Of a stretch of DNA of 44,560 bases, positions 3,334 through 33,136 are shown piece by piece. The notes beneath the pieces were generated by a model, which was not told where the DNA came from, did no database searches, and worked only from the letters and a program-made list of their open reading frames with translations. Each line of letters begins with the position of its first letter. Position 1 is the stretch's first letter. The stretch covers positions 1-44,560 of the forward strand of contig FLMG01001430.1 of NCBI GenBank assembly GCA_900088475.1, in the 5' to 3' direction. A program made the translations under genes and the position numbers. This DNA is from Hyphochytrium catenoides. Taxonomy: Eukaryota > Protista > Hyphochytriomycota.

Positions 3334-6300
3334 TCAGTGCATTCCTCCTTTCCCTCCTCCTGGAAGTGTTCTTGAGCTGCCCGCTCTCTCTGTGTCTCTC
3401 TCTCCCTCTTCTTCTGGCACAGCGTCAAGAATCTTCCTACCGAAGAGTAGACCTAATCTGCGCTCAGAGGAAGGATTAATAGGGGATTCTTCTTTCTCTT
3501 TGTCTTTGCCTTTCTCTTCTTCCTCCTCCTCCTCTTCATCTTCTCCCTTGCTGTCTGGCTCTGAGCTGCCATTTGAGGCTTCGTTATTGTCATCAACCGC
3601 TGTGGAGGAAGACCCACTACCAGAGGACTCTTCAGCACCTAGAAGAGAAAAGAAAGGTTAGGCTTGAATAGATGGCTGTTTGCCTCTTGTCTATCTCCCG
3701 TTCTTGGTCGTTTACGCCCTCTCCTAGTTTTCCCTTCATCATCTTTTGGTTCCTTGACCTCTCTCATCTTTCTTCCTCGCTCCTTTCTCTATTCTTTCTG
3801 CCTCTTTTCTTTTCCCTTCTCTTCTGTCTTCATTGCTGGCTGGTGCGTTGATCCTCGCTTCCTCCTCCTTACTGGCAGCGCTTATCGCATCCTTATCCAT
3901 CCCTTACCATTGTCGGCCCTCTCGTCTCCCAACCTCAAGGCATTCATCAAACGGTCGGCGTCTGTCTCTTTTGCTGGAGAGTCGGGCTTGGACTTCTTTC
4001 TCATGGGGGGAGCAGAAGATGTGCTCCGTCTTTTGCCTAAATTTCTCAGTGTCTCTTCTTCTGAAGAGGACGAGGAGCTGCTCAAATGGCAATAGAGGAA
4101 GAGTGTTTTATATATGTGTTTGAAGGGGTGAGTGTAGACAGAGAAGAGAGAGAGAAAGCAAGAAAGAAAGAGAGAGAGGAGAGAGAGAGAGAGAAAGCGA
4201 CAAACGGTTACTAATAGGATATGGCAAATGATGAGCACGACGCTTCGGCAAGAAGAGGGAGCATCATCGCGAGCGAAGGAGAGCACAGATCATCGTCCTT
4301 CACACACCTGCTTTCCTCCTCTTTGGTGCTTGATGCTTGTGCCTCTTCCTGGTTATCCTCAGCTTCCTCTGGGGCAGTCCTAACTACTTCAGGCGCGGGG
4401 CCTAAGAAGCCACGCAGAGGGTAAGAGATGGGTAGAGTGGATTGTCAGGATATGAGAGAGAGAGAGAGAGAAAGGAGAGTATGACACGTATCTTTACCTG
4501 CTTCTACTGCGGGCTCACTGCTGGCCTTCATGTGTCTCAGCGCTGTTGAAGGTAGTGAACTCATAATCTGCGCTACCTCCCATAGTCCCTCTTCCTCAGG
4601 CACGTTCCGTAATAACTTGGCAAAGTAACCGTAAGCATGCGTGCGCACCTACTGGTGGTGTCAGCGGAATCCCTTGCCTATGGAAGACAGATCTATGTTT
4701 TCCGTACCTGCACAGCTGTCTTTGTCTTGACAAGGTGTTGAATCTTCTTCCACTTGCGACCAAACTTCTCTAAGCCCTGAGGAAGCAGATACAAGCAGTG
4801 AGATGTTAACCAGAGTGAGAGAAAATAGAGAGAGAGAGAGTGAGAGCGAGAATGCGGATCAGGAAAGGTGCAAAGCAAAGGAAGCTTATACTGATAGTCT
4901 ATACTCAAGCTTCACGCTGCTAAGAGGATTGACTAACAAAATAGTCAAGCCGAGGAGCAGGAGGCGAAAGAAAGCGCGAGTCACTGCAGATCCGTCAAGA
5001 CAGTACCTCTAGGAACTTCTCATGCTCTTCCTTCGTCCATCTCTCCCGTCTTTTTGATGCTGAGCCGCCTGGTTCTAGAATTAGAAGAAGAAGAGTTAGC
5101 GCAGTGCACTAGCTAGGAGAGGCCACTTTCAGTGGAGTGCGCACTAAAATTTGTGATGACTCTCTATAAGAGAGGATGAGACACAGAAGCTGTGACCAAG
5201 TGCGGGACGTGCAACAGGAGAGATGGAATAGATGCGAGACGGGAGAGAAAATAAGAGAGAAACGATAAGATATAAACCTGAGCTGGCCGCAGCTGCACCC
5301 GTTTCTTCCCTCAGTCCACCTGCCATTTCTCTTCGTTGCTCCTCTCCCTGTGGCTGGTACCAGACTTGAGGGTGATGGGAGCTGGTGTCTGGTGTGCTAT
5401 AATAGGGATATTGATACAGCAGACCCGGGCCCCCTGATGAGGTCAGGCTCATCCCTAAAGGAGCCTGAAGAGCCTGCTTTCCTCTCTGCAGACAAGTGAT
5501 CAGGTAAAGGTATGTCGAATCAGTGACAGCACTAGGGCAAAACTCAAATTTTCTCCTCTCTGCTACCTGATCGAGAAAGCCCAAGTTGCCTGGGAACTGA
5601 TGGGACAGAAGAGTGGCCGCGGCCTGCTGTTCTGCTCTAAAGTCTCTTGGAACTCCTGGATGTGTGGGCACCTGTCGGCCCGCTGGGGCAGGTGAGGGAG
5701 ACTTTGAAGTGGTGGCATGCTTCTCCTGAAACGCAACCGGAAGACCAAGACAGATGCAAACAGCGGTACACAGCAGGTGATTTAGTTAAAGAAATGAAAT
5801 AGCGAGGATAGTCCTACTTTAGACGAGGGAAGACGAGAGACTCCTAAACTGGACAGGAGGACCAATGCGGGGGAGACACATACAGAGAAAAGCAAGAGAC
5901 CCAACAGGAAAATGGTCCAGACCCCGAGGGCAGACTTGCCTGACAGTGTAGACAAAAGACGAGAATGGAAAGGAGAGACTAACACATACAGACACGGAAA
6001 AAGAGAAAATGTGAAAGGTAGAGAGCTTACCATCTGGTGTCCTGGGTGTCTCTTTGGTGTCCCGCCTGCTGCTGAAGGTCTGGGGGGCAGGTTTGCACTC
6101 TGCGGGAGCTGAGATAGCTGTGTCCCGCCCACAGAGACGTCTGAAGAATACGTGGGGCCTAATAACCTATCTGCTTGGTATGGATGGCATTCCCGAAGAT
6201 AGGGAAGAGGTGGAGAAGCCGTCGGACGGAGGCAAAAAGTAGTGGAGGATAAGTGAGAGGCATGCCCTGCAAGAATGAAATCCTGTCGAACCCTAGAAAT

Positions 6301-10870: not shown

Positions 10871-13832
10871 ATGGCTGGCAAGCAGAGGCCTGCCAAAGTC
10901 TATCGTGATTCTAACGCCTGCCAAAGGAGGGACGAAGACAAGCCCAGTGTCTGCCGGCATGTCAGAATCCGACCGTCACCTAGTCCGGCCCGTCGGAATG
11001 AGCTCTCAGATTTCCTGGTAGAGTACTCCGTTGTCGGTGCCTCAGAGGGCCATCACCCTCTCGTCATTTCTGTCTGTCCACTTCTTTCTCTGCTTGGAGG
11101 CCCTTTTTTGGTTATCTACAGATGGCTTTGTTCTCTCTTAGCTCTCCGTCTTGACTGACCACCCTTCGGCCACTCCTCTTTGGATAGCCACCCCTGGTAA
11201 CTGGAAGCCTGGTCGCATCTTCTCTTTCTCTCTGTGTTCTCTCTCCTTGTCCCCAGCTACTCAGACAAGTAGGCCTTCTTACACCCATTGTGCTCATCTT
11301 AGAATACGGAGGACATTGCACTGGTAAAGGACTTCATGGAACACGGGGGCCGGATAACACAGAAGCTTAATAAGACGGCAGTGGCGGTCAGAAGATCCCC
11401 TGCAGAGAGAGAAGAGGAGCGCATTGCCGCCCTTCTCTTTCAACAACAGGAAATGGACATCGTGGATCTCTCACACCAACGAATAGGTGGGATGCACGGC
11501 TAACTTTCTGCATTGCATCTTAGGCATTGAGAACTTTCTCTGTCTCTAAACTGCTGATCATTCTCTGCTCCTCACTATTTAGGGTCACCCTCTTCCGAAA
11601 ACTTCTGTCATCACGTCTTAAAATCTCCTTCCTTGTGCACGTTCCATGTTCCCCACTGATATGTTGCGGCAAATGACGCCAATCCTTTACTCTCGCCTCT
11701 CCATCCTGCTCCATGGTGTTGCTTCCTGTTCTTTCACACTGCGATCAACGTAGAGGGCTCCTTACGCTTTGGAACGCAGTTTGGCCTGCTACGCATTTTG
11801 GACCTTTCACACAATGGGCTGACGACTTTGAAAGGAGTGGAACACTTAGCTTCCCTCAGGTAGACTCCATGGGGATAAGGAGGCCCAACTAGTGAATGCA
11901 ATCAGGCCCGAGAGGACGTGGATAGGGCGCTAGGGGTTAGCCAACGTGGGGACAAGTTAAATTTAGCAGAAAGAGTACGAAGCACACCGCATTATAAAGA
12001 GAGGGGAGAATAGACGGTTGGCTAACGCATAGCTTTGGCCCTGTACAAAAGGGAGCTTAACGCTAGCCATAATAAGCTTCGGAGCACCCAAGGCCTGGAG
12101 AAGAATAGTCAACTAGAAATACTGAGGGTGGCGCATAACAGGTAGGCCAACAGACACAAGGTCAGAGCTAGAGGCAGAGACGCAGTGTTTCGAACAGGCA
12201 GATCCCAAAACTGTCATACAGAATGAAGCAGAAGGACGTCTATAAAAGACATGTTAGGATAGGTAATGACTGTCATTGCACAGGATAATGTTTGTCTCGG
12301 GTCTAGAGAGTGTTCTGAAGCTCACCCTTCTGGATGTCTCTCACAATCTCCTCACCAAGTAAGTTCGCTCTAACAATTCCTGCCACTCTCTGGTTAGCCA
12401 GCACTTGTTCTTGAAGGTCTCCTTTTGTCGCCTGTGTTGCCTCTATCCTGGTACTCGAATCTCCTACTGGATCGTCAGTCACCTCAAACAAGATTAAACC
12501 TTAGCCTTCCTTGCATACAGCCTTTCTGACATCAGAAGCCTTTCGCTAAATACCGCGTTAGCCCAGCTTTACTTGGAGGTCAGAAGCAGGGCCAGCATTC
12601 TCGTTGCCTCCACATGTGTCCGTTGCTCTAAATATGTTGTGCTCCTCCGTCCCCGTCTCATTACCACGGCATTTACCATCCGTCAATGTTCCGTGTAAGC
12701 TTTATCTGTTACCGTCTAAGTTTAGCCCTTACATCTGCAGGGAAACCCGCTTGTTCTTAAGCCGAACTTAGTTCTGATTCTCCCTGACCTGGTAGGTGGA
12801 CCACAAAGAATAAGTATATCACTTCCACCGTTGCTCGAATTTGTGCCGCGATCAAGAGGGTAACATCTCACAGGAAATATAATGCTTTCATCAACAGATT
12901 CCAAGTCTTCAAGCGCTAGATCAGGTAGTCCTCAGTAAGAGTAAGAGGGGTGCTAAGCGCGCGTCTAGGTTCTCACCGCAGAGTAAGTTGGAGCACCCTG
13001 TTTATGCCTTGTCCCGTCTACAGTCTGCTACTCGCTTCCTTCTTTTCGTCTTATTATCTGTCTATAGTCTGCTACTCGCTACTTACCCTTCCTTGTTTTC
13101 TCTCTGTCTATGAGTATGCTGCCTTCGGTCTTTATCCAGAACTCAAGACAATGAACCTTTCCACATTTAACTGGACAGGACCAAGGTCTGCAAGATCGTT
13201 AACGCAGCTCCAAACTGCGCGACCAAGTTCTGCAAGACTGCTAACGCAGCCCCAACTTGGGCCTACGAAAGGAAGGCATTCTCCTGCTCTTCAGCCAAAA
13301 GAGACCATACTCCATGTCACTGAAGGTATGTGCAGCCGCCTGTAATGGTGATAATTGTGTGGAAAGAAAGAGCTACGGAATTTGAGAAGGCTTGCAAAGG
13401 AAAGGACGGATGAGCGATGTTTAAAACTAAGCTTAGAGATGTTGCTATTCAATGATGGACCGTGCTAGTCCCATAGACAGATAGAAGTGGATTATGGAAA
13501 GGACGAGGTGGCGTCGTCTAAGTTTTTGAACAAGAGTCATGCTAAGGGCTCACTGTCTTCGGTAAGGCCCGTCGCAGACAGCTCACGAGGAGGCGGAAGA
13601 GCTCCATGACGAACCCAAAGTCAAGCAGGAGGAAGCACCCACGACAAGCCACCCTCCTACCGTCTTTCCGCCATCGGAACTACCCGGCAGCCGCGACGCC
13701 CATCAAATTCAATTAATAGAGCTCTGTCAGGCGCTAGAATCAGTTATTGAAAGGAAGCAGGACGTCATCCGCAGGCTAAAGAGTACCCGAGGAGACTATC
13801 ACAGAACGCCAAGACGACTCTCAGGAGCATAA
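10871..13832 (+). CDS. Leucine-rich-repeat protein (SDS22-like LRRs + LRRcap) with disordered C-tail
   Basis: Spliced exons give LRILDLSHNGLTTLKGVEHLASL, RELNASHNKLRSTQGLE, LEILRVAHNRI, LTLLDVSHNLLT, LYLEGNPL and an LRRcap-like IPSLQALD. Last exon ~13582-13832 ends QLIELCQALESVIERKQDVIRRLKS...GA*. The 3' junctions are less certain. Confidence 0.8.
13179..13258 (+). repeat. Imperfect 42-bp in-frame tandem duplication in the LRR gene
   Basis: gaccaaggtctgcaagatcgttaacgcagctccaaact (13179) versus gaccaagttctgcaagactgctaacgcagccccaactt (13221), encoding PRSARSLTQLQ / PSSARLLTQPQ. Confidence 0.85.
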
Positions 13833-23181: not shown

Positions 23182-25161
23182 ATGAAGATGGGTAGACTTA
23201 GCGGTGCCATTGCTATGGCGGTGGTCTACATCTTTGCCCTATCGGAGCTGGCCTTCGCACAAGGGCCTCTAGAAAGCGACCTCATGCCAGTAGCTCTCAA
23301 TGAGATGGTTCAATCGAAAGAATCAAGGTTCAGGGAATTCTTCATTCAAAACCTTGGATCTCCTCATGGAGTGAAGACGGATCAAGACCTGGAAGACTAC
23401 TTGCTTCGCACTTACCTCTTCGATGCTTCTCGCGCTTCAGCGACGCATGTTGACAGTACTTGGGGTCAAGACCTCTTCCTCCAAAAGAAAATCTTCTATC
23501 AACGGACAGATATGCCTGTCGTGATCATGCACGGTATGGGAGATGCTGCGGACCACGACGGCATGCAGCGGATTAGAGCGGTAGGCATTCCACGCTTGTC
23601 GTAGCTAGAGATGAAGGCGTAACACTTAGCCGTCTACCATAACACGCTAGGTCGTGGAGAAATACTTGCAAGTATACACTGTGAACGTGCCAATTGGTGC
23701 GTCAAGCTCCGAAGATATGAGAAACAGCTACTTCATGAACCTCGACGATCAGGTTGAGGTCTTCACACAATTCATCAAGAAGGTAGGAGCTTTCATCAAG
23801 GCTTTTGTTGGTCTATTGGAAGCTCAAGGACCATCCTTCGTATCTCCAGGACCCAAAGCTTCAAAACGGCTTCAATGCCATTGGCTTCTCACAGGTGAGG
23901 TCTTCACTTAGACTCATGAGCTTAACTGATGAAGTGGTTTAAGGGTTAGCTCCTGTAGGGCAATCTTATTATCAGAGGTTACATTGAAAGACATAACGTA
24001 CCCGCTGTAAAGCACTGGATCTCACTCCACGGCCCTCACGGAGGCATTGCAGAGCTACCGAGCTGCAAACCAGGCGACACCTTCTGTCAGAGAGTCACAG
24101 AGGTATATCAATCCAATGGTAGTGATGGTAGTAGGTCTAAGTCTAAGTTGGCCTGCCTTGTAGCTCATCGGATCATTCGCATACTCCTCCTGGGTCCAAC
24201 GTAAGGCCATCCTCTCTGTCTCTGCAGTGAAAAAGCCGTCCTTGCTCTCCACGTGAGGCTTTAGTCTGATCTCTAGTCTTTCTGACGGAGTACACGCAAC
24301 GACGGCGTCGTCGGGTTCGCTCTCATTCTTTTCATGCGTGGACTCACACGTCTGGGCCTCCGATGCTTCTTGGTCTATCTTATACTGTCCAGTCTTACAA
24401 TTCTGTCTCTCCTCTTTATTTCCTTCTCACCCTTGCGCCTTGTCTCTCGTTTATCATTAGATCATGTCTGTCAGGCAAACTACTTCCGTGATCCTCTACG
24501 GATTCCGCAATATCTAGCTAACGGTAGGTTCTCGTGTCCCGGCGTCATCTGATCTTCTTCCATCAATGACAAGCGCTCACATCAGAACCTTAGCACTTTT
24601 CCTTCCTGATATCAACAATGAGCGGAAGATGAAGAATGCCACTTACAAGGACAACTTCCTAAAGTTGCAAAGCCTGGCGCTGGTGATGGCAGGCAATGAT
24701 ACCACTGTCATACCTAAACAGAGCGAATGGTGCGTCCCCGTGCTTGCTTCTCCCTCGATCCACTCTGGTCTTTCCTCGTTTGCCTATCGCTCAAGCCTAA
24801 GCCGATGCCCTAGGTGTGTCTAAGTACGTATCGCTCTGCACAGGTTCGGTGCTTTCCGGGACGGCAATTTTTCAGAGATCGTGGAGATGAAAGATACTGC
24901 TTGGTAAGCAACTGGAGCAGGACTTTTGAAAAGGAAGAAGAGAAAGGGAGATGAAGGTGGATAGTCCGCCTAGCACTCTGACGATTGACCTATGCTGCTC
25001 TTGCGACGATTGTGCCAAATAGGTACAAGCAGGATCTGTTTGGCCTACAGACTCTCGATAAGCAGGGCAAGATTTTCAAGTACACGACGAAGGGTAACCA
25101 TATGCACTTCACCAGCGAAGAGCTGCTGGACATCATCAACAAGCACTTTGTCGAGTATTGA
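23182..25161 (+). CDS. PPT1: Palmitoyl-protein thioesterase 1 (lysosomal alpha/beta hydrolase)
   Basis: Nine exons give PVVIMHGMGD, GFNAIGFSQG (Ser), QANYFRDP, FLPDINNE, NDTTVIPKQSEWFG (Asp), YKQDLFGLQTLD and GNHMHF (His). Signal peptide present. Stop TGA at 25159-25161. Confidence 0.93.
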
Positions 25162-25554
25162 ATGACAGAGTAGCCATTGGGAAGGGGCCAAAGTCTGAAG
25201 AGGAGAGAAGAATTGAAGATGCGAGCAGAACTGAGGACACCGAAGGAGTGGGAGAAAGGGTAACCAGCGAGAGAGATGAAAGAGAAAGTGGGAGAGAGAA
25301 AAAGATTACCCTAGCATTTTAAAAGCCAGTAAGTTTTTAGCCATAACGTGCTTCCATATCAATGATTTAAGGCGTTGCAGAAGTGAATCTGCATTGCTGC
25401 CCTGCGTAGTGTGCCCAGCCATAGGTAGACATAGAGAAGAAAGAAAGAGGAGAGGGTCTTGTTAAAGAGAGAGACAGACTGAGAAAGATATTGGCTGGTT
25501 AGTTGGTGTTGGCGTGTAGGTTTTAGGCTCTTGCGAAGGAGAGACTGTTCTCTC

Positions 25555-28500
25555 CTACTCTTCTCCTGAAGAGGGAAGGTCCACGGAATCTTGCTTCTGC
25601 ACCCCTTTCGCGTTCAGCTGCCGAACGAACTCGCCCATCTGCTTCTCCAGCTCTGAGTGCGTAGCGCATCCGCCCGGGCACTCGCAGCATCCTCCATACT
25701 CTTTTGGCACCTGCCAGACAGATTGAAGTTAAAATTGTATCAATGCGGAAGTCCGACACTCTGTTTCTCCCTTGTCTCTCTCCTGTCATTGTCTGAGTTC
25801 CCTCCATCTCGTTCTCTTTTCCTCTGTCTCTTTCATTATCTCTGTCTGTCTGTCTTCTCTCTCCCAGCTTCTTCAGCCACTTCCTCACCTGTGAGGCATC
25901 TACCAGTTCTAAGAGCTCCTTCTCATATCCGCCTTTGTAGATTTTTGTCTTCTGTCTTGTCACTGGATGGACCAGCGGATACATCATCTTCCATATGACG
26001 TTGAACCAGGTAGGAACGTTGATCAGGAAGACTACATGGAGACGCTCAGGATAGTTCGGTCCCACGAACGCAGAAAGAGTCTTCACGAAGTCAAACAGTG
26101 GACCCGCCATATCTGAGAAGGAGATGCCTGGAAACCAGTAGAGAACAGGCATCAGAGGGTCAGAGACACATCTCTAGGGACTTCGAGCAACGAGGAGAAG
26201 AGATACGGGGCAAAAGTACTATTAACGCTCGGTATACTTTCACCTTTCAAGTCCATGATCTTCGTGACCCTTCCTCTAGGCCAGGGTCTGTTGTCTACAT
26301 ACTTCCATAAATATTCCTGTACAAAAGCGTAGTGAAGCAACAAGCTGTCGATAGGGACATTCTCCTCACGAAGAAGCTCGAACGAGCGCCGGCATGTGCC
26401 TGCTATCTCGTAGTTCACAGGGTGCCCTATTTCACGAAAGAGAAAGAAATGGAGATTTACGAAAAGGATGATAACGACAGGAGAGACCACCAAGTGGCGA
26501 AGCAGCCAGGAACCACAAGATGCAGGTCTATTAGCCAGCCGACATGGCTGCTTCGCCACAGATGACAAGACAGGCAAGAGTGGGAGACTGAACATATATG
26601 TGCAGGGAACTAGCACTCGCGTATGTGTTAGACCCGAAGGCTCAGAAATTGAAAGCAAGGAAGAGCTAGAGCTGGAATGAAGGAATAGTAAGCAGTAGGC
26701 GGTAGTACAGGTAGGAGAGAGAGAACAAAAAGAACGAGAGAGTTGTGAGAGCACACCTAGTTTGTCGTAGCCATGAAAGTATGACGGATAGCATCTTTTG
26801 ATCGTCTCAAAGTAAGGCTGAGGCGTGTTCAGCAGCTGTGGAATGTTAAAGTCCTTCACCCATTGTTGATGGACAGCATAACGGCGCTTCGCCTCTTCTA
26901 CGTTGCCTTGTGTGCACTTCAGGAAGCGAAGGGGAAGTCCTCCGCTATCCTCTTCTGCTCGCTCCTGTGCCTCCTGCTGTACCTCTGAAGCGATGCAGCT
27001 AGCAGGACGGGGTTGAGAAGAGAGAGACACACGGTAAATGCGAGGAACCAGAGCCAAAATGGCTAATTATCACTGAAGCTACTAACACCGAGAGGCAAAG
27101 TAACTTTGGCTTGTTTGCAATGCGAGCAATGGATAAGGAAAGAGGGAATAGCCCTTACCTTTCCTTATCTTCCTGCAGAGCTTCAAGTAGGTCCACTCCC
27201 TGCCTACAACCTAAGAAGGTTACCTTCCATGACTTGGCGTGGCTTCGCGTGGGAGGGTGAGCGACGCCTTGCATAAAGAGACAGAGGAAGACAACCCCAG
27301 CTGCGAAAGGTAGGACACTTTCTAGGCGGAGAGTTCCGGAAGATTGGACCACGCCGGAACTGAGAGCAATGCAAACTACCCCTAATCCTCCTAATATTAA
27401 GGGGGAGAGAGCTAGGAGGCGAAGGAAGAAGCGAGAGGTGGATGGCGCCGCCTCTTCCAGTCGAGATGCTCCGCCTTCCGAAACGCGCGTGAGCTCTAGT
27501 TCGAGCCCTATTTGTCTCGGAGTGTCTTCCTCTCCTTCTTGATCTTTGGCACCTTCTGCACTCAATGACTTCGTAGGGATCTGCAGAAGTGGCCACAATA
27601 CCCTCTTTCCTTGGCCATTCTGTCTCTCTCTTCCGAACGGAGCGCTAGGCGTTACTTTCTCCATGTCTTCTCTGCCGATTCTCGCCATCATGCCAGAAGA
27701 TAGATACACCCTAAGACCTTCTGCCGGAGAAAGACGAACTAACATAGAAGAGCCCCATGCAGACTCCCAGCCGATTATCCTCGCTCCCAAAGGAACGCTT
27801 TCTGGGCCCGCATCGACAAGGATCAAATTTATTCGGGTCTCTTCCTCTACCAATGGCTGATCCTCCTCGTATCTACAGAGGCGAGAACACAATGAGCTGC
27901 ATAGGGACAGAATCGTAAAGAATCACAGAAGGGCGGGGCAGACTGAAGGTCAACTTTTCGGAAGATAGACGTGTAGCGGGATAGTGGACAAGAAGGCGCA
28001 TAGAGAATAGCCGGACTACGGCGTACTCCTTATGCATGGAAGTGGAGACGTAAGTCAATTCTTGAAGAAAGGGATTGTCTCAGACGGAAGTTCAAGAGAG
28101 ACCTAGGCTCTTAAGACGAAGAAGAAGAGAGATGTGTACTTCAATACGAGAAAGAGAGAGGCGCGAGAGGGACGGAACGATAGAAAAGAGAGCAAGAGGT
28201 GGGAGTGAGACATGGACTCAGAAACACGGAAGGCATGGATCAAAGGGATAAGAACTTGCGAATATTCTCTGGAGACCCTCGTGCCAAGGGTACAGGGGGC
28301 AGCATGGTACATGACGACTTCTTTCTTACCCTTTGCTGAGATAGACTGGTTTAAGTGAGCCTTCCTTTGCCTTGGCAATTGTCTCCAACCAAAGGTCTCT
28401 GTCCTCTTGCGCCGGAAGTGCAAATACATGCTTTCGGGAACTCCTCTCACTCCTTACTCCCAAACAATATCTCTTCTCGCCTTGAGAGGACGTGAGTTCA

Positions 28501-29784
28501 AGGCCTCTGCTCTCCAGGCTTTCCAACATAAAGTGGCACCTCTCTTCGCCGAGGAGCGTCCCTTCTTGAGGACGGAAGACATGTAAGGCGGCGTTTGTTA
28601 GGACTAAGTGCCTCGAGTTCCATTGCCCAATCTTCGTGTTCTCTTTTGCAAAGCCGGACAGGATAACGCCGATGGAGGGAGAAGAACCATTTCCTCTGAG
28701 TTTCTCTTCCTCCTCACTCTTGATAGAGGCAAAGCAGTCCTTGCACACTCTTACAGGGAATAGGTACCCGTACTGAGGAAGAGGAGAGCGATGAGACGAG
28801 CAGCGTGCACAGAAGGAGAAGCCACATGCACGACAGTAGTGACGATAGCGATTGGATCCAGCACTTTGGATGCCATCGCGAAGTCTGCCTATAGCTCCGC
28901 CTGAGAACGAGATCCTCTGTGCTCTCGTGGGAAGAGGAGGTGAAGGAGCATTGACAGAGAATGAAGAAGACTCTCCATTTACCGCAGCAGGATCGTCAAA
29001 GCTATCGACTGGAGAGGCAGAGAGAGACACCGGTACTGTCGTCGCATCCAGGTGGAATGGGGAGGGAGGGGCACTACGGGTGAGTCTTGTCGCTTCTGGA
29101 GTACTTGGAGATGCATTGGCGGGAGAGACCACTACTGCTGGGGGAGGCAGCCTCTTCTCTCCCTCAGGACTTCCTGCCTCTTGTTTAAGCAGAACAGGGA
29201 GCTCCTGTCCGTGACAGCATATGAGATGAGATAATTGAATATCCAGCATTTTAAAAAAACAAGATCTAGCCATCTGAATGAACTATTCAATTGAGAACCA
29301 AAGCAGTAGCTGCTCTAGAAGGCTCTGGAAAGGCTGGAACTAGAAGGAAAGAAGCTGGAAGGCCGTAAAGTGCCAAGCATAGCAAATAGAGAGAAGGGCA
29401 TCTCCAGGGAGAAAGGGCCACTTGGGGCTGGAGACAGAGACAAACAAGGAGTAGACTCAGCATTGTGAAGAGGCAAATAGACACATATCAAAGGTAGCTC
29501 TGCGCTACATAGGTCAAGAGACAGGCTTGCAAGAGAGCATCCGGCTAGCTAGGGTGCGGTAGACAAAGGACAAGACTCTATTAGGGTTAGAAGAGCCATA
29601 CCACCGTATCCTGCTGACTCTCGCCAGCGGGAGAAGAAGATGCTGAGAAGTTTGGAGCTGAGCTGGAGGAGTTCCTTGTCGGCACCAGGGAGAAAAGAGG
29701 AGCCTTGCAGGCCTTGCAGTGTGTGCTGCGCTTGCGGCGAGGTGGATTGGAGGTCTTCCGCCTCCTCCTCAGGGAGGAGATCAT
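25555..29784 (-). CDS. Multidomain lipid-binding protein: split FYVE zinc finger + PH + two-helix TM hairpin + CRAL-TRIO/Sec14
   Basis: Exons 29784-~29602, 29204-28330, 27872-27159, ~26998-26757, ~26427-26244, ~26127-25889, ~25710-25555 join in phase. Motifs: CKAC ... [16 protein letters not shown]...PVRVCKDCF (FYVE); [24 protein letters not shown] (PH); two hydrophobic segments; LRFLK, HGYDKLGHPV, IMDLKG, NYPERL..INVP..F..IW, VPKEYGG (Sec14). Confidence 0.85.
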
Positions 29785-30974: not shown

Positions 30975-32397
30975 TTAACTGATCATCATTCCATCATCAT
31001 CATCACTCTCATCGCGATTGAGTTTGGCTCTACGCTTTCTCTCTCTGTTGAACTCCAGCAGAGCGGGACCGCCAGGTATGTAGCCACGCAGATCACCTGA
31101 GCTTTTTAGATCTGGTGCGTCCATCGCAGTAAGGACGGCTACCGCTTCAAAAATTAGCTCTTGCACGTTATTGACCGTACATCCATACTTCACCATCAGG
31201 TCCCAGCAGCGGCTCAGTACGCGGTCACTGTATCGGCTGCGGCCAGTTCCTGAGCCTTTTCCCTAAACGCAACGGTAGAAAGGCAGACAAAGCGTGTTAG
31301 AGCCCCCGAAAGTAACGATTGAAAGTCTCTAGCGACCTTAGTCGTCCTAGGATCTGCTAAACGCAGATGAGGTTTGCTGGCATTTGTCGCCAGGCGCCTT
31401 ATGGATTGCTGTGCTTCTTCAAGCTGGCCTCTGAGCTCCTCTTCCCTCTCCTGCTGGTCTTTGATTGTTTGCCTGAGAGTTTCTATGATCGCTTTCTGCT
31501 CTGCCTGGAATGTTGGTCCTAGATGGTGGCTTCTTGGCCGCAAACTACTATCCTCGATGGCTGGAGGGTCGTCGCGCGTCTCCTCATGCCGTTCGTAGAG
31601 GTTGATAAGAGCTAACACGGCCTCTCGACGATAGCCTGACAAGCCTAGACTCAGCCCAGTATAGGAAAGTAATCAACAGAAGGATCCACCTTTATCCACT
31701 TCAAGTAGCCCCTTGAAAGTCTTCTGAAGCCACAGCCTGGAAGCCCTTCTGTTTGCTAATATTGTCTTCCGTCGTTGGCGCCGTTCCTTAGAAGAACTCA
31801 TTTGTTGTTCAGCAGCAGGAGGGCGTGCGGTTATTTGACGTCTTTTCCTTTTTCTTGTGACCCTTTCTCTTCGCTGGGCCTCTGACGGACGGTAGAATGT
31901 CAATCGCAATGGGAGCACAGCATCACTCAACATTTGTTTCGTGCATGAAAGCTGCTCTTGGTGGACCTTCTTCAGAGGTATCTGTTGAGACAGAATAGGT
32001 TCGGTGGCGGTGAGGATTCACAAGGTTTATTTATCGAATTGGCTTTTATTAGGCAGTTGAGTAGCACTCTTACCTGCCGGCCATTCACCTTAAAAAGCAC
32101 ATCCCCCACTTGAAGCTTGTTGCTCTCTTCTGCGCGGCCCCCTGGAATTATCTCAGTCAGTGCAACAGCTAGGCTGTTATGGGCGCAACTCGAAGCTCCA
32201 GCCTTAAAGGTGAGACCAAGAGGCTTGTCTTCAAAGATGACATCAAAAAGTGATGCCAAAAACTCTTCTTCTTCGTTCTGACCACCATTTGTCACGCGTA
32301 TATCGATTGAAGCAGGCTCCACTTCAGAGAACGGAGTGGGTTGTGATAGCGCTTTTTTTGCGCCATCGTCATTGCATGTACCGCCCTCAGATTCCAT
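30975..32397 (-). CDS. PDZ-domain protein with basic (NLS-like) segment, coiled coil and unknown C-terminal helical domain
   Basis: FDVIFEDKPLGLTF...IIPGGRAEESNKLQVGDVLFKVNG...LPLRLTF is a PDZ signature. Introns at ~32073-31982, ~31690-31646 (45 nt) and ~31337-31263 (CTAAC branch) join the ORF-track pieces in phase. Coiled coil IETLRQTIKDQQEREEELRGQLEE. Confidence 0.8.
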
Positions 32398-33136
32398 ACT
32401 CAAATTTTTCAACTACCCACACCACCACCTGCTGTGCACCTCAGTAACTACGGAAGACCAGCGAGGTTGACGAGCCAGGCAGCAAGCTCTTATGTTGTTA
32501 CCGAACGATCTATCATAGTGCACCCTCACAGTCTTCCTTACACCTCGGACAGTATATGTATGGTATGTTGTCATCTATCATCTTTACGGCGTCCTAGAGC
32601 TTTGCATATACTCAAAGACTCATCAGAAGTCTGGAGAAGAAGAGGAAGTGGAGATCGAAGATCGAAGCCTGAAAGCTCTATCAAAACGGATTTTTCTGTC
32701 AGATCCCTGCTTCCCTTTCTGAACTGGATCGTCTGAGGAGAATCAATATTGTGATAACCGATACTATTGATCTGGCAGCCTTGAGCCTTTCATAGAAATA
32801 ATGTCAAGGTTGATTCTCCATAGACCACCCTATAATAACTTGAAATAATCCCACTTGTTTGTTTCTTTCGATAGCTTCCCAGCCACCCAATGATGGCCTT
32901 GGTCAATAGTAGTACTGCTCATCACCAAAACATTAGAGGCTTACAATGGTAGTAGTAATGCTTGGGGATGGCCTTAACATTTGTTAGCGGACAGTGCCGC
33001 GGATTCAGCGCGGCACCGATTGATGGTGGCGAAGAAGTGGGGCTCAACTTGGGCGCAATAAGCTTCGTGCAGTCTTCACTTTGCGCTCTTCTCCTTCTCT
33101 TCCAGCAGCTTGTGGAGTGCTCCATAGACAGGAACC

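Follow-up and report, generated by a model that had tools for sequence, protein, structure and literature searches.

A predicted membrane-anchored protein joining a split FYVE finger, a PH domain and a Sec14 domain in Hyphochytrium catenoides, with a possible lipid-handling role at organelle contacts

Protrudin, which combines a FYVE finger with hydrophobic hairpins, forms contacts linking the endoplasmic reticulum (ER) to late endosomes (PMC9692390), and MOSPD2, which carries a membrane-anchored CRAL-TRIO/Sec14 domain, also acts at ER contact sites (PMC9692390, PMC6030701). The two types of module are not brought together in the surveys devoted to them: that of FYVE architectures never mentions Sec14 or CRAL (PMC2837644), and that of the CRAL_TRIO superfamily never mentions zinc fingers or transmembrane (TM) segments (PMC3313917). 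Here we describe a gene at positions 25555-29784, on the minus strand, of a 44,560-nucleotide stretch of the Hyphochytrium catenoides genome (assembly GCA_900088475.1, contig FLMG01001430.1, positions 1 to 44,560; hereafter the window). An earlier note, made from the letters of the window alone, had proposed a single spliced frame in which FYVE and PH domains precede two hydrophobic helices and a CRAL-TRIO/Sec14 domain that is complete, and this composition is borne out by Pfam matches, Kyte-Doolittle analysis and splice phases. The predicted protein is a new domain architecture assembled from known parts, and it follows a logic already familiar from contact-site proteins with a membrane anchor.

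The gene consists of seven exons, as established by reading of the DNA and a scripted splice-site check, and every intron has GT..AG borders. The exon lengths add up to 2658 nt, or 886 codons. Two close relatives of the open reading frame (ORF) encoding FYVE and PH were found, P0001 and P0002, and the family is seen in three organisms only, represented by the window and two further loci, L001 and L002. On a single strand of L001, the 14 kb contig carrying P0001, the parts follow each other as in the window: an ORF resembling exon 1, one for FYVE and PH, one of 241 residues that contains two hydrophobic segments, one for Sec14 and the last exon. The gaps between these ORFs measure about 60-100 nt, start with GT and end with AG. 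Four intron positions are common to the window and L001, with identical phases 2, 2, 1 and 0, the phase-0 intron being that between exons 6 and 7. The two junctions on which the earlier note depended, 28330/27872 and 27159/26998, are GT..AG with matching phases and lie at the same positions and phases in L001; their donors, AAAGG/GTAAGA at the end of exon 2 (28330) and AAAG/GTAAGG at the end of exon 3 (27159), are both of phase 2. The intron at 26427-26756 is precisely absent in L001, where the sequence is continuous (FHGFDRQGYPVNFEIAG). Since exons 4 and 5 are thus contiguous in L001, with no intron, the window splice 26757/26426 is directly confirmed.

Similarity between the window and L001 at the DNA level is limited to the exons. 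At the protein level, identity reaches 69% for exon 4, 88% for exon 5, 94% for exon 6 and 65% for exon 7 (L001 12242-12394). The 94% amino-acid identity of exon 6 is accompanied by 79% DNA identity, and the exon is therefore under purifying selection. Exon 4 has no in-frame ATG, exon 5 has a single Met codon, close to its end, and exon 3 has no conserved start. The Sec14 domain is therefore not translatable alone. From the intron positions and phases shared with L001, the exact absence of one window intron there, the restriction of DNA similarity to exons and the lack of a Sec14 start codon, we conclude that the FYVE-PH and TM-Sec14 parts belong to one gene.

The introns of the window gene are CT-rich and 116-457 nt long, compared with about 60-100 nt in L001 (10622-12240); a candidate first intron in L002 would be about 39 nt. 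Intron 4 (26427-26756, minus strand) measures 330 nt, which is divisible by three, and contains no in-frame stop. Its retention would add 110 residues inside the Sec14 domain and would not truncate it.

FYVE fingers are contiguous domains of 60-70 residues (PMC2837644). The window FYVE departs from this, an intron and a Ser/Pro-rich spacer lying between its first Cys pair and its core. In the ORF 28326-29273, Pfam FYVE (PF01363) matches residues 142-185 with an E-value of 2.8e-11, covering profile positions 22-67 only. The core aligns well with the FYVE domains of Lst2, Hrs, Vps27 and EEA1 in the PDB. The pre-core segment and the core, delimited by these matches and by the three-species alignment, occupy 28719-28916. 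Cysteines 3 to 8 are found there (CRAC, CARC, CKDC), and the 22 conserved residues just before the core contain no Cys. The first pair (CKAC) is located in exon 1 (29603-29784), which starts with the ATG and encodes a polybasic N-terminus (RRRRK..PPRRKR), this first Cys pair, a hydrophobic turret-like LFSL and a Ser-rich tail. All eight cysteines, in four CxxC pairs, are thus present. The FYVE finger of the earlier note can be retained for the core in the large exon, and has to be amended in that the finger is split.

Exon 1 is 67% identical to its L001 counterpart over 42 amino acids and is also kept in L002. The CxxC..LFS(L/F) pattern is conserved in all three species, as in L001 (..THCKNCRAPLFSLYP) and L002 (..SSQCNQCNAQLFSFVP). 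To score these peptides, a model of the N-terminal half of FYVE was built from 102 ordinary FYVE domains among the HMMER matches to the FYVE-PH exon. The exon 1 peptides of the three species outscored 998, 989 and 1000 of 1000 shuffles, which is modest support, as the three are not independent. In each of the three species, the exon 2 frame runs without a stop through the 110-140 codons upstream of the core, up to a phase-0 acceptor just downstream of the phase-0 donor of exon 1. In the window, this donor lies at 29602 or 29605, and the nearest phase-compatible acceptors are at 29273 or 29282. Many donor-acceptor pairs are phase-compatible at this junction, so that the exact acceptor is uncertain; a phase-0 intron right after exon 1 fits all three species. 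The 5′ part of exon 2 (28917-29273) encodes a poorly conserved spacer rich in Ser, Pro and Ala (P 15%, S 14%, A 11%). The two FYVE halves are probably separated by some 140-175 such residues, a length that hinges on the unconfirmed acceptor. The insertion falls right after the hydrophobic LFS(L/F), which is the site of the membrane-insertion or turret loop of ordinary FYVE domains. No split FYVE of this kind was described in the literature searched. Through its phosphorylation, a disordered insertion of about 150 residues, rich in Ser and Pro, at the membrane-insertion loop could switch the assembly of the finger, and with it tethering, in a lineage-restricted, anchored, FYVE-aimed contact-site protein exchanging lipid through Sec14; we advance this idea as a doubtful one.

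The lipid-binding motifs of the finger are also unusual. There is no WxxD motif in any of the three species, the stretch of about 20 residues preceding the first Cys being polybasic and free of Trp and Asp. The R(R/K)HHCR motif is replaced by (Y/M/L)RHYCR in the three species, with loss of the first Arg and a change of the second His to Tyr. The C-terminal R(V/I)C motif is kept, FPVRVC being invariant. Specificity for phosphatidylinositol 3-phosphate (PI3P) is determined by the WxxD Asp together with the second His of HHCR, and plant variant fingers in which both residues are altered may have other phosphoinositides as ligands (PMC3017826). As both residues are missing from the window FYVE, PI3P binding should not be assumed, and the premise of the earlier note that FYVE binds PI3P cannot be transferred to it.

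The PH domain follows at 28365-28664. Pfam PH (PF00169) is matched in the same ORF over profile positions 2-104 of 105 (E-value 2.1e-07; 31.8 bits for a curated cutoff of 25.1), and the domain is strongly conserved in L001 and L002. The closest solved structure is the PH domain of PLEKHA6 (E-value 0.07). In the region of strands 1 and 2, aligned to ..KQWNKRWFVL of PLEKHA6, the Lys of KR, one of the two basic residues usual in strand 2, is a Ser in the window PH.

The region between the PH domain and the hydrophobic helices is encoded by the first part of exon 3 (27431-27872). It is about 145 residues long, has no Pfam match even at an E-value of 10, and is 23-29% identical to its L001 counterpart. 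The AlphaFold2 model of the whole exon 3 is beta-rich and of low confidence, with a mean predicted local distance difference test score (pLDDT) of 52; the middle region, modelled alone, reached 43. A Foldseek search of the PDB with the model of this exon returned nothing, and its look-alikes in the ESM Atlas (best score 0.78) were unnamed bacterial clusters, which are uninformative. In a wide structural search with the better of the two models, C2 domains recurred at Z scores of 6-6.9, under the stated noise level of about 8. A C2-like identity may thus be taken as a lead, not as a finding. A PH-like reading of the same region (seven strands and one helix at the C-terminus, interrupted by the hairpin) was also considered and was left unsupported.

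Two closely spaced hydrophobic segments are encoded at 27257-27430 (approximately 27344-27430 and 27257-27319). Their Kyte-Doolittle means over 19 residues are 2.45 and 2.13, above the usual threshold, and the L001 orthologue has two such segments at the equivalent place (2.08 and 2.41). In the AlphaFold2 model of exon 3, the segments form helices 157-177 and 186-203. The outer flanks of both helices are basic, the short loop connecting them is near neutral, and the helices themselves contain Pro, Gly and Ser. The earlier note had claimed a two-helix hairpin with cytosolic ends. The two segments and their basic outer flanks are in line with this claim, and the topology itself we infer: an even number of passes, together with the basic outer flanks, would leave both ends in the cytosol, as needed by cytosolic FYVE, PH and Sec14 modules. 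The predicted sequence thus fits a hairpin of this orientation.

The end of exon 3 (27159-27256) encodes a conserved SWKVTF..C motif and an acidic linker. Within this motif, located after the second helix (window 27203-27232, minus strand; L001 approximately 11330-11360), the residues W, K, V, T and F do not differ between the two species, in an exon that is otherwise 23-29% identical. In the low-confidence model, WKVTF forms a strand beside the beta-rich region preceding the helices.

The Sec14 domain is encoded by the last four exons: exon 4 (26757-26998) carries the linker and the N-terminal helices, exon 5 (26244-26426) the first part of the lipid-binding domain, exon 6 (25889-26127) the CRAL-TRIO core and exon 7 (25555-25710) the C-terminus (VPKEYGG..) with the stop codon at 25555-25557. 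Exon 6 matches Pfam CRAL_TRIO (PF00650) with an E-value of 1.1e-18 (67.9 bits, cutoff 22.6), and its PDB matches are SFH5 and Sec14. Exon 4 aligns to residues 57-116 of yeast Sec14, which are N-terminal helices, with an E-value of 0.011. The L001 copy, which is contiguous, can be aligned over Sec14 residues 66-258, and its best matches are SFH5 and yeast Sec14/Sfh1 (E-values 2e-14 to 2e-13). With 88-94% identity to L001 in exons 5 and 6, this domain is better conserved than any other part of the protein.

The residues contacting lipid were compared using the numbering of the full-length Sec14 chain 9efp_A in the alignments. In yeast Sec14, R65, K66, E207, D233, T236 and K239 contact phosphatidylinositol (PtdIns), and Y111, Y122, S173 and T175 contact phosphatidylcholine (PtdCho). 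Among the PtdIns positions, E207, T236 and K239 are kept, and R65, K66 and D233 are replaced by T, Q and H, respectively. At the PtdCho positions, the tool alignments give F for Y111 in the window, and N for the Y122 equivalent in the aligned L001 copy, the window reading likewise. The changes S173 to V and T175 to K come from manual alignment only. The lipid-exchanging Sec14 of the earlier note is therefore upheld for the completeness of the domain, and qualified by PtdIns contacts that are only partly kept and by two changed PtdCho positions in the tool alignments.

In the model that we infer for the host membrane, bound lipid, tethering and transfer, a protein of about 886 residues would be fixed in one organelle membrane, by default that of the ER, by its two-helix hairpin, with both ends cytosolic. 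The N-terminal arm would comprise the polybasic stretch, the variant FYVE split by a long disordered insertion, the PH domain and the poorly conserved beta-rich region, and its basic, FYVE and PH elements would bind an anionic, phosphoinositide-bearing membrane. The C-terminal arm would be the Sec14-type lipid-binding domain on its linker of about 50 residues, and this highly conserved domain would bind or exchange lipid at the membrane so recognised. An anchored contact-site role in lipid handling, stated in this general form, is reasonable because the design is that of protrudin, MOSPD2, ORP5/8 and the extended synaptotagmins, and we put its probability at roughly one half. Several points weigh against it. 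The PI3P specificity of the window FYVE is doubtful, the assembly of the two halves into one finger is putative, and by our own reading of the alignments the PH domain appears to have no clear basic K-Xn-(K/R)-X-R signature. The middle region is just 23-29% conserved and has no confident fold. Finally, in the aligned Sec14 domain, three PtdIns contacts (R65, K66 and D233) and two PtdCho contacts are replaced.

The same modules could act in cis. The protein would then reside in an endosomal, Golgi or vacuolar membrane, its FYVE/PH arm would bind that same membrane, and the Sec14 domain would present phosphatidylinositol to a lipid kinase, or sense lipid, with no bridging of two organelles. Such presentation has been proposed for yeast Sec14 (PMC10543664), and it is the yeast Sec14/SFH class that the window domain resembles most, with E207, T236 and K239 retained; moreover, just the linker of about 50 residues lies between the second helix and Sec14. 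However, R65 and K66 are replaced, and the N-terminal arm of about 500 residues, with its disordered parts, could reach a second membrane. We regard this cis action as possible but unlikely. It is improbable that the protein is solely a scaffold or tether, in which Sec14 would serve as a docking module for membrane or protein and would move no lipid. For this there are precedents in the CRAL-TRIO domain of MOSPD2 on lipid droplets and in p50RhoGAP, and the two tool-aligned PtdCho changes and partly kept PtdIns contacts would agree with it. The Pro, Gly and Ser within the helices would also suit a hairpin that may be monotopic, allowing partitioning to lipid droplets. Against this, conservation is by far at its highest in the Sec14 core (88-94%), which suggests a constrained pocket. 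Finally, it is very improbable that two products are made, a soluble one with FYVE and PH and a membrane-anchored one with Sec14, be it from two genes or because intron 2, which brings in a stop right at its donor, is retained: this stop ends the FYVE-PH ORF in all three species, but it is expected from any phase-2 GTAA/GTAG donor, the L001 gaps are just about 69 and 100 nt with matching phases, exon 3 has no conserved start and window exons 4-5 no usable ATG.

The domain order, which the earlier note had not recognised from characterised proteins, held up as unfamiliar, the searches returning neither a full-length relative nor a paper on FYVE with CRAL-TRIO. An exhaustive HMMER search with the FYVE-PH exon against 1.84 billion representative proteins gave only two close relatives, P0001 (63% identical) and P0002 (52%), which are exon-sized ORFs on unannotated assemblies. 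Among the best 150 of the 1905 matches, the other 148 are generic FYVE proteins, and none has a window-type PH, middle exon or Sec14, also with filters off; no apicomplexan orthologue appeared in this search. Searches with exon-sized queries gave no full-length relative. A word search with the contiguous L001 Sec14 ORF found only itself within its length range, and is silent on longer proteins. In a cluster look-up, all three clusters were singletons. A metagenome scan with the three-species alignment detected two loci, over the FYVE core only, at 38% identity and of generic type. The literature searched contains no description of FYVE together with Sec14/CRAL-TRIO, or of FYVE, TM segments and Sec14 in one protein. 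In oomycetes, FYVE proteins number in the hundreds and their partners vary; Phytophthora sojae alone has 272 (PMC8233823), and given these numbers a diverged oomycete counterpart is possible.

The upstream and downstream neighbours of the gene are both common to the window and L001. Downstream and convergent lies a palmitoyl-protein thioesterase gene (window 24334-25165, plus strand), with Pfam Palm_thioest matches of 7.8e-15 and 1.1e-05 on two exons; it is also found in L001 (12575-13067) in the same orientation. Upstream and co-oriented is a gene with a PDZ domain (window 30975-32412, minus strand; E-value 6.9e-06), the last exon of which resembles L001 8122-8493. About 1.2 kb of non-coding DNA extend between the stop codon of the PDZ gene and the ATG at 29784. 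Further upstream in L001, ORFs at 3485-4216 (plus strand) match GOST_TM, a seven-transmembrane Golgi protein family.

If the parts work as suggested, the protein would be an anchored lipid-transfer tether based on Sec14, adding to the transfer folds used at membrane contact sites. The design of anchor, reader and transfer module would then also have arisen among stramenopiles, on their hyphochytrid/oomycete side. The split variant FYVE has a structural interest of its own, both for the tolerance of the turret loop to insertion and for the ligand of an HYCR-type pocket devoid of WxxD. The practical reach is limited, as the family is seen in three organisms only, for which no genetic system is known.

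Comparison with known systems places the window protein between several families. Ten uncharacterised Sec14-like proteins of Toxoplasma gondii appear in a review figure with predicted PH, TM and CRAL-TRIO elements (PMC10543664); no FYVE is listed for them, and they are apicomplexan whereas the window is from a stramenopile. The class V variant FYVE of plants (PRAF, PH-RCC1-FYVE) resembles the window FYVE in having no WxxD Asp and a replaced second His (HNCY, compared with HYCR in the window; PMC3017826). It belongs to different proteins and is a contiguous finger, with no evidence of common descent. Yeast Sec14/Sfh and plant SFH5 give the best sequence matches to the window-type Sec14 and share its N-terminal helices. 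However, classic Sec14 phosphatidylinositol transfer proteins are soluble, with a single domain or, in plants, with a nodulin domain, whereas the window Sec14 is predicted to be anchored and has altered contact residues. MOSPD2 resembles the window protein in its membrane-anchored, cytosolic CRAL-TRIO/Sec14 domain. It differs in having a single C-terminal TM helix, an FFAT-binding MSP domain and neither FYVE nor PH; in the window protein, the anchor lies between two arms and Sec14 is C-terminal. Protrudin (ZFYVE27) also has a hydrophobic hairpin anchor and a cytosolic FYVE, whose lipid preference is non-canonical (PMC9692390). Unlike the window protein, it lacks PH and Sec14, carries its FYVE as a contiguous finger at the C-terminus, and contains FFAT, coiled-coil and Rab-binding parts; no sequence relation beyond the FYVE fold is seen. 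ORP5/ORP8, the extended synaptotagmins and Snx13/14 use other transfer folds (ORD, SMP and PXA), and none of them pairs Sec14 with FYVE. Their design is nevertheless the same as that proposed for the window protein: a TM anchor, a reader of phosphoinositides or anionic lipids and a lipid-transfer module (PMC9692390).

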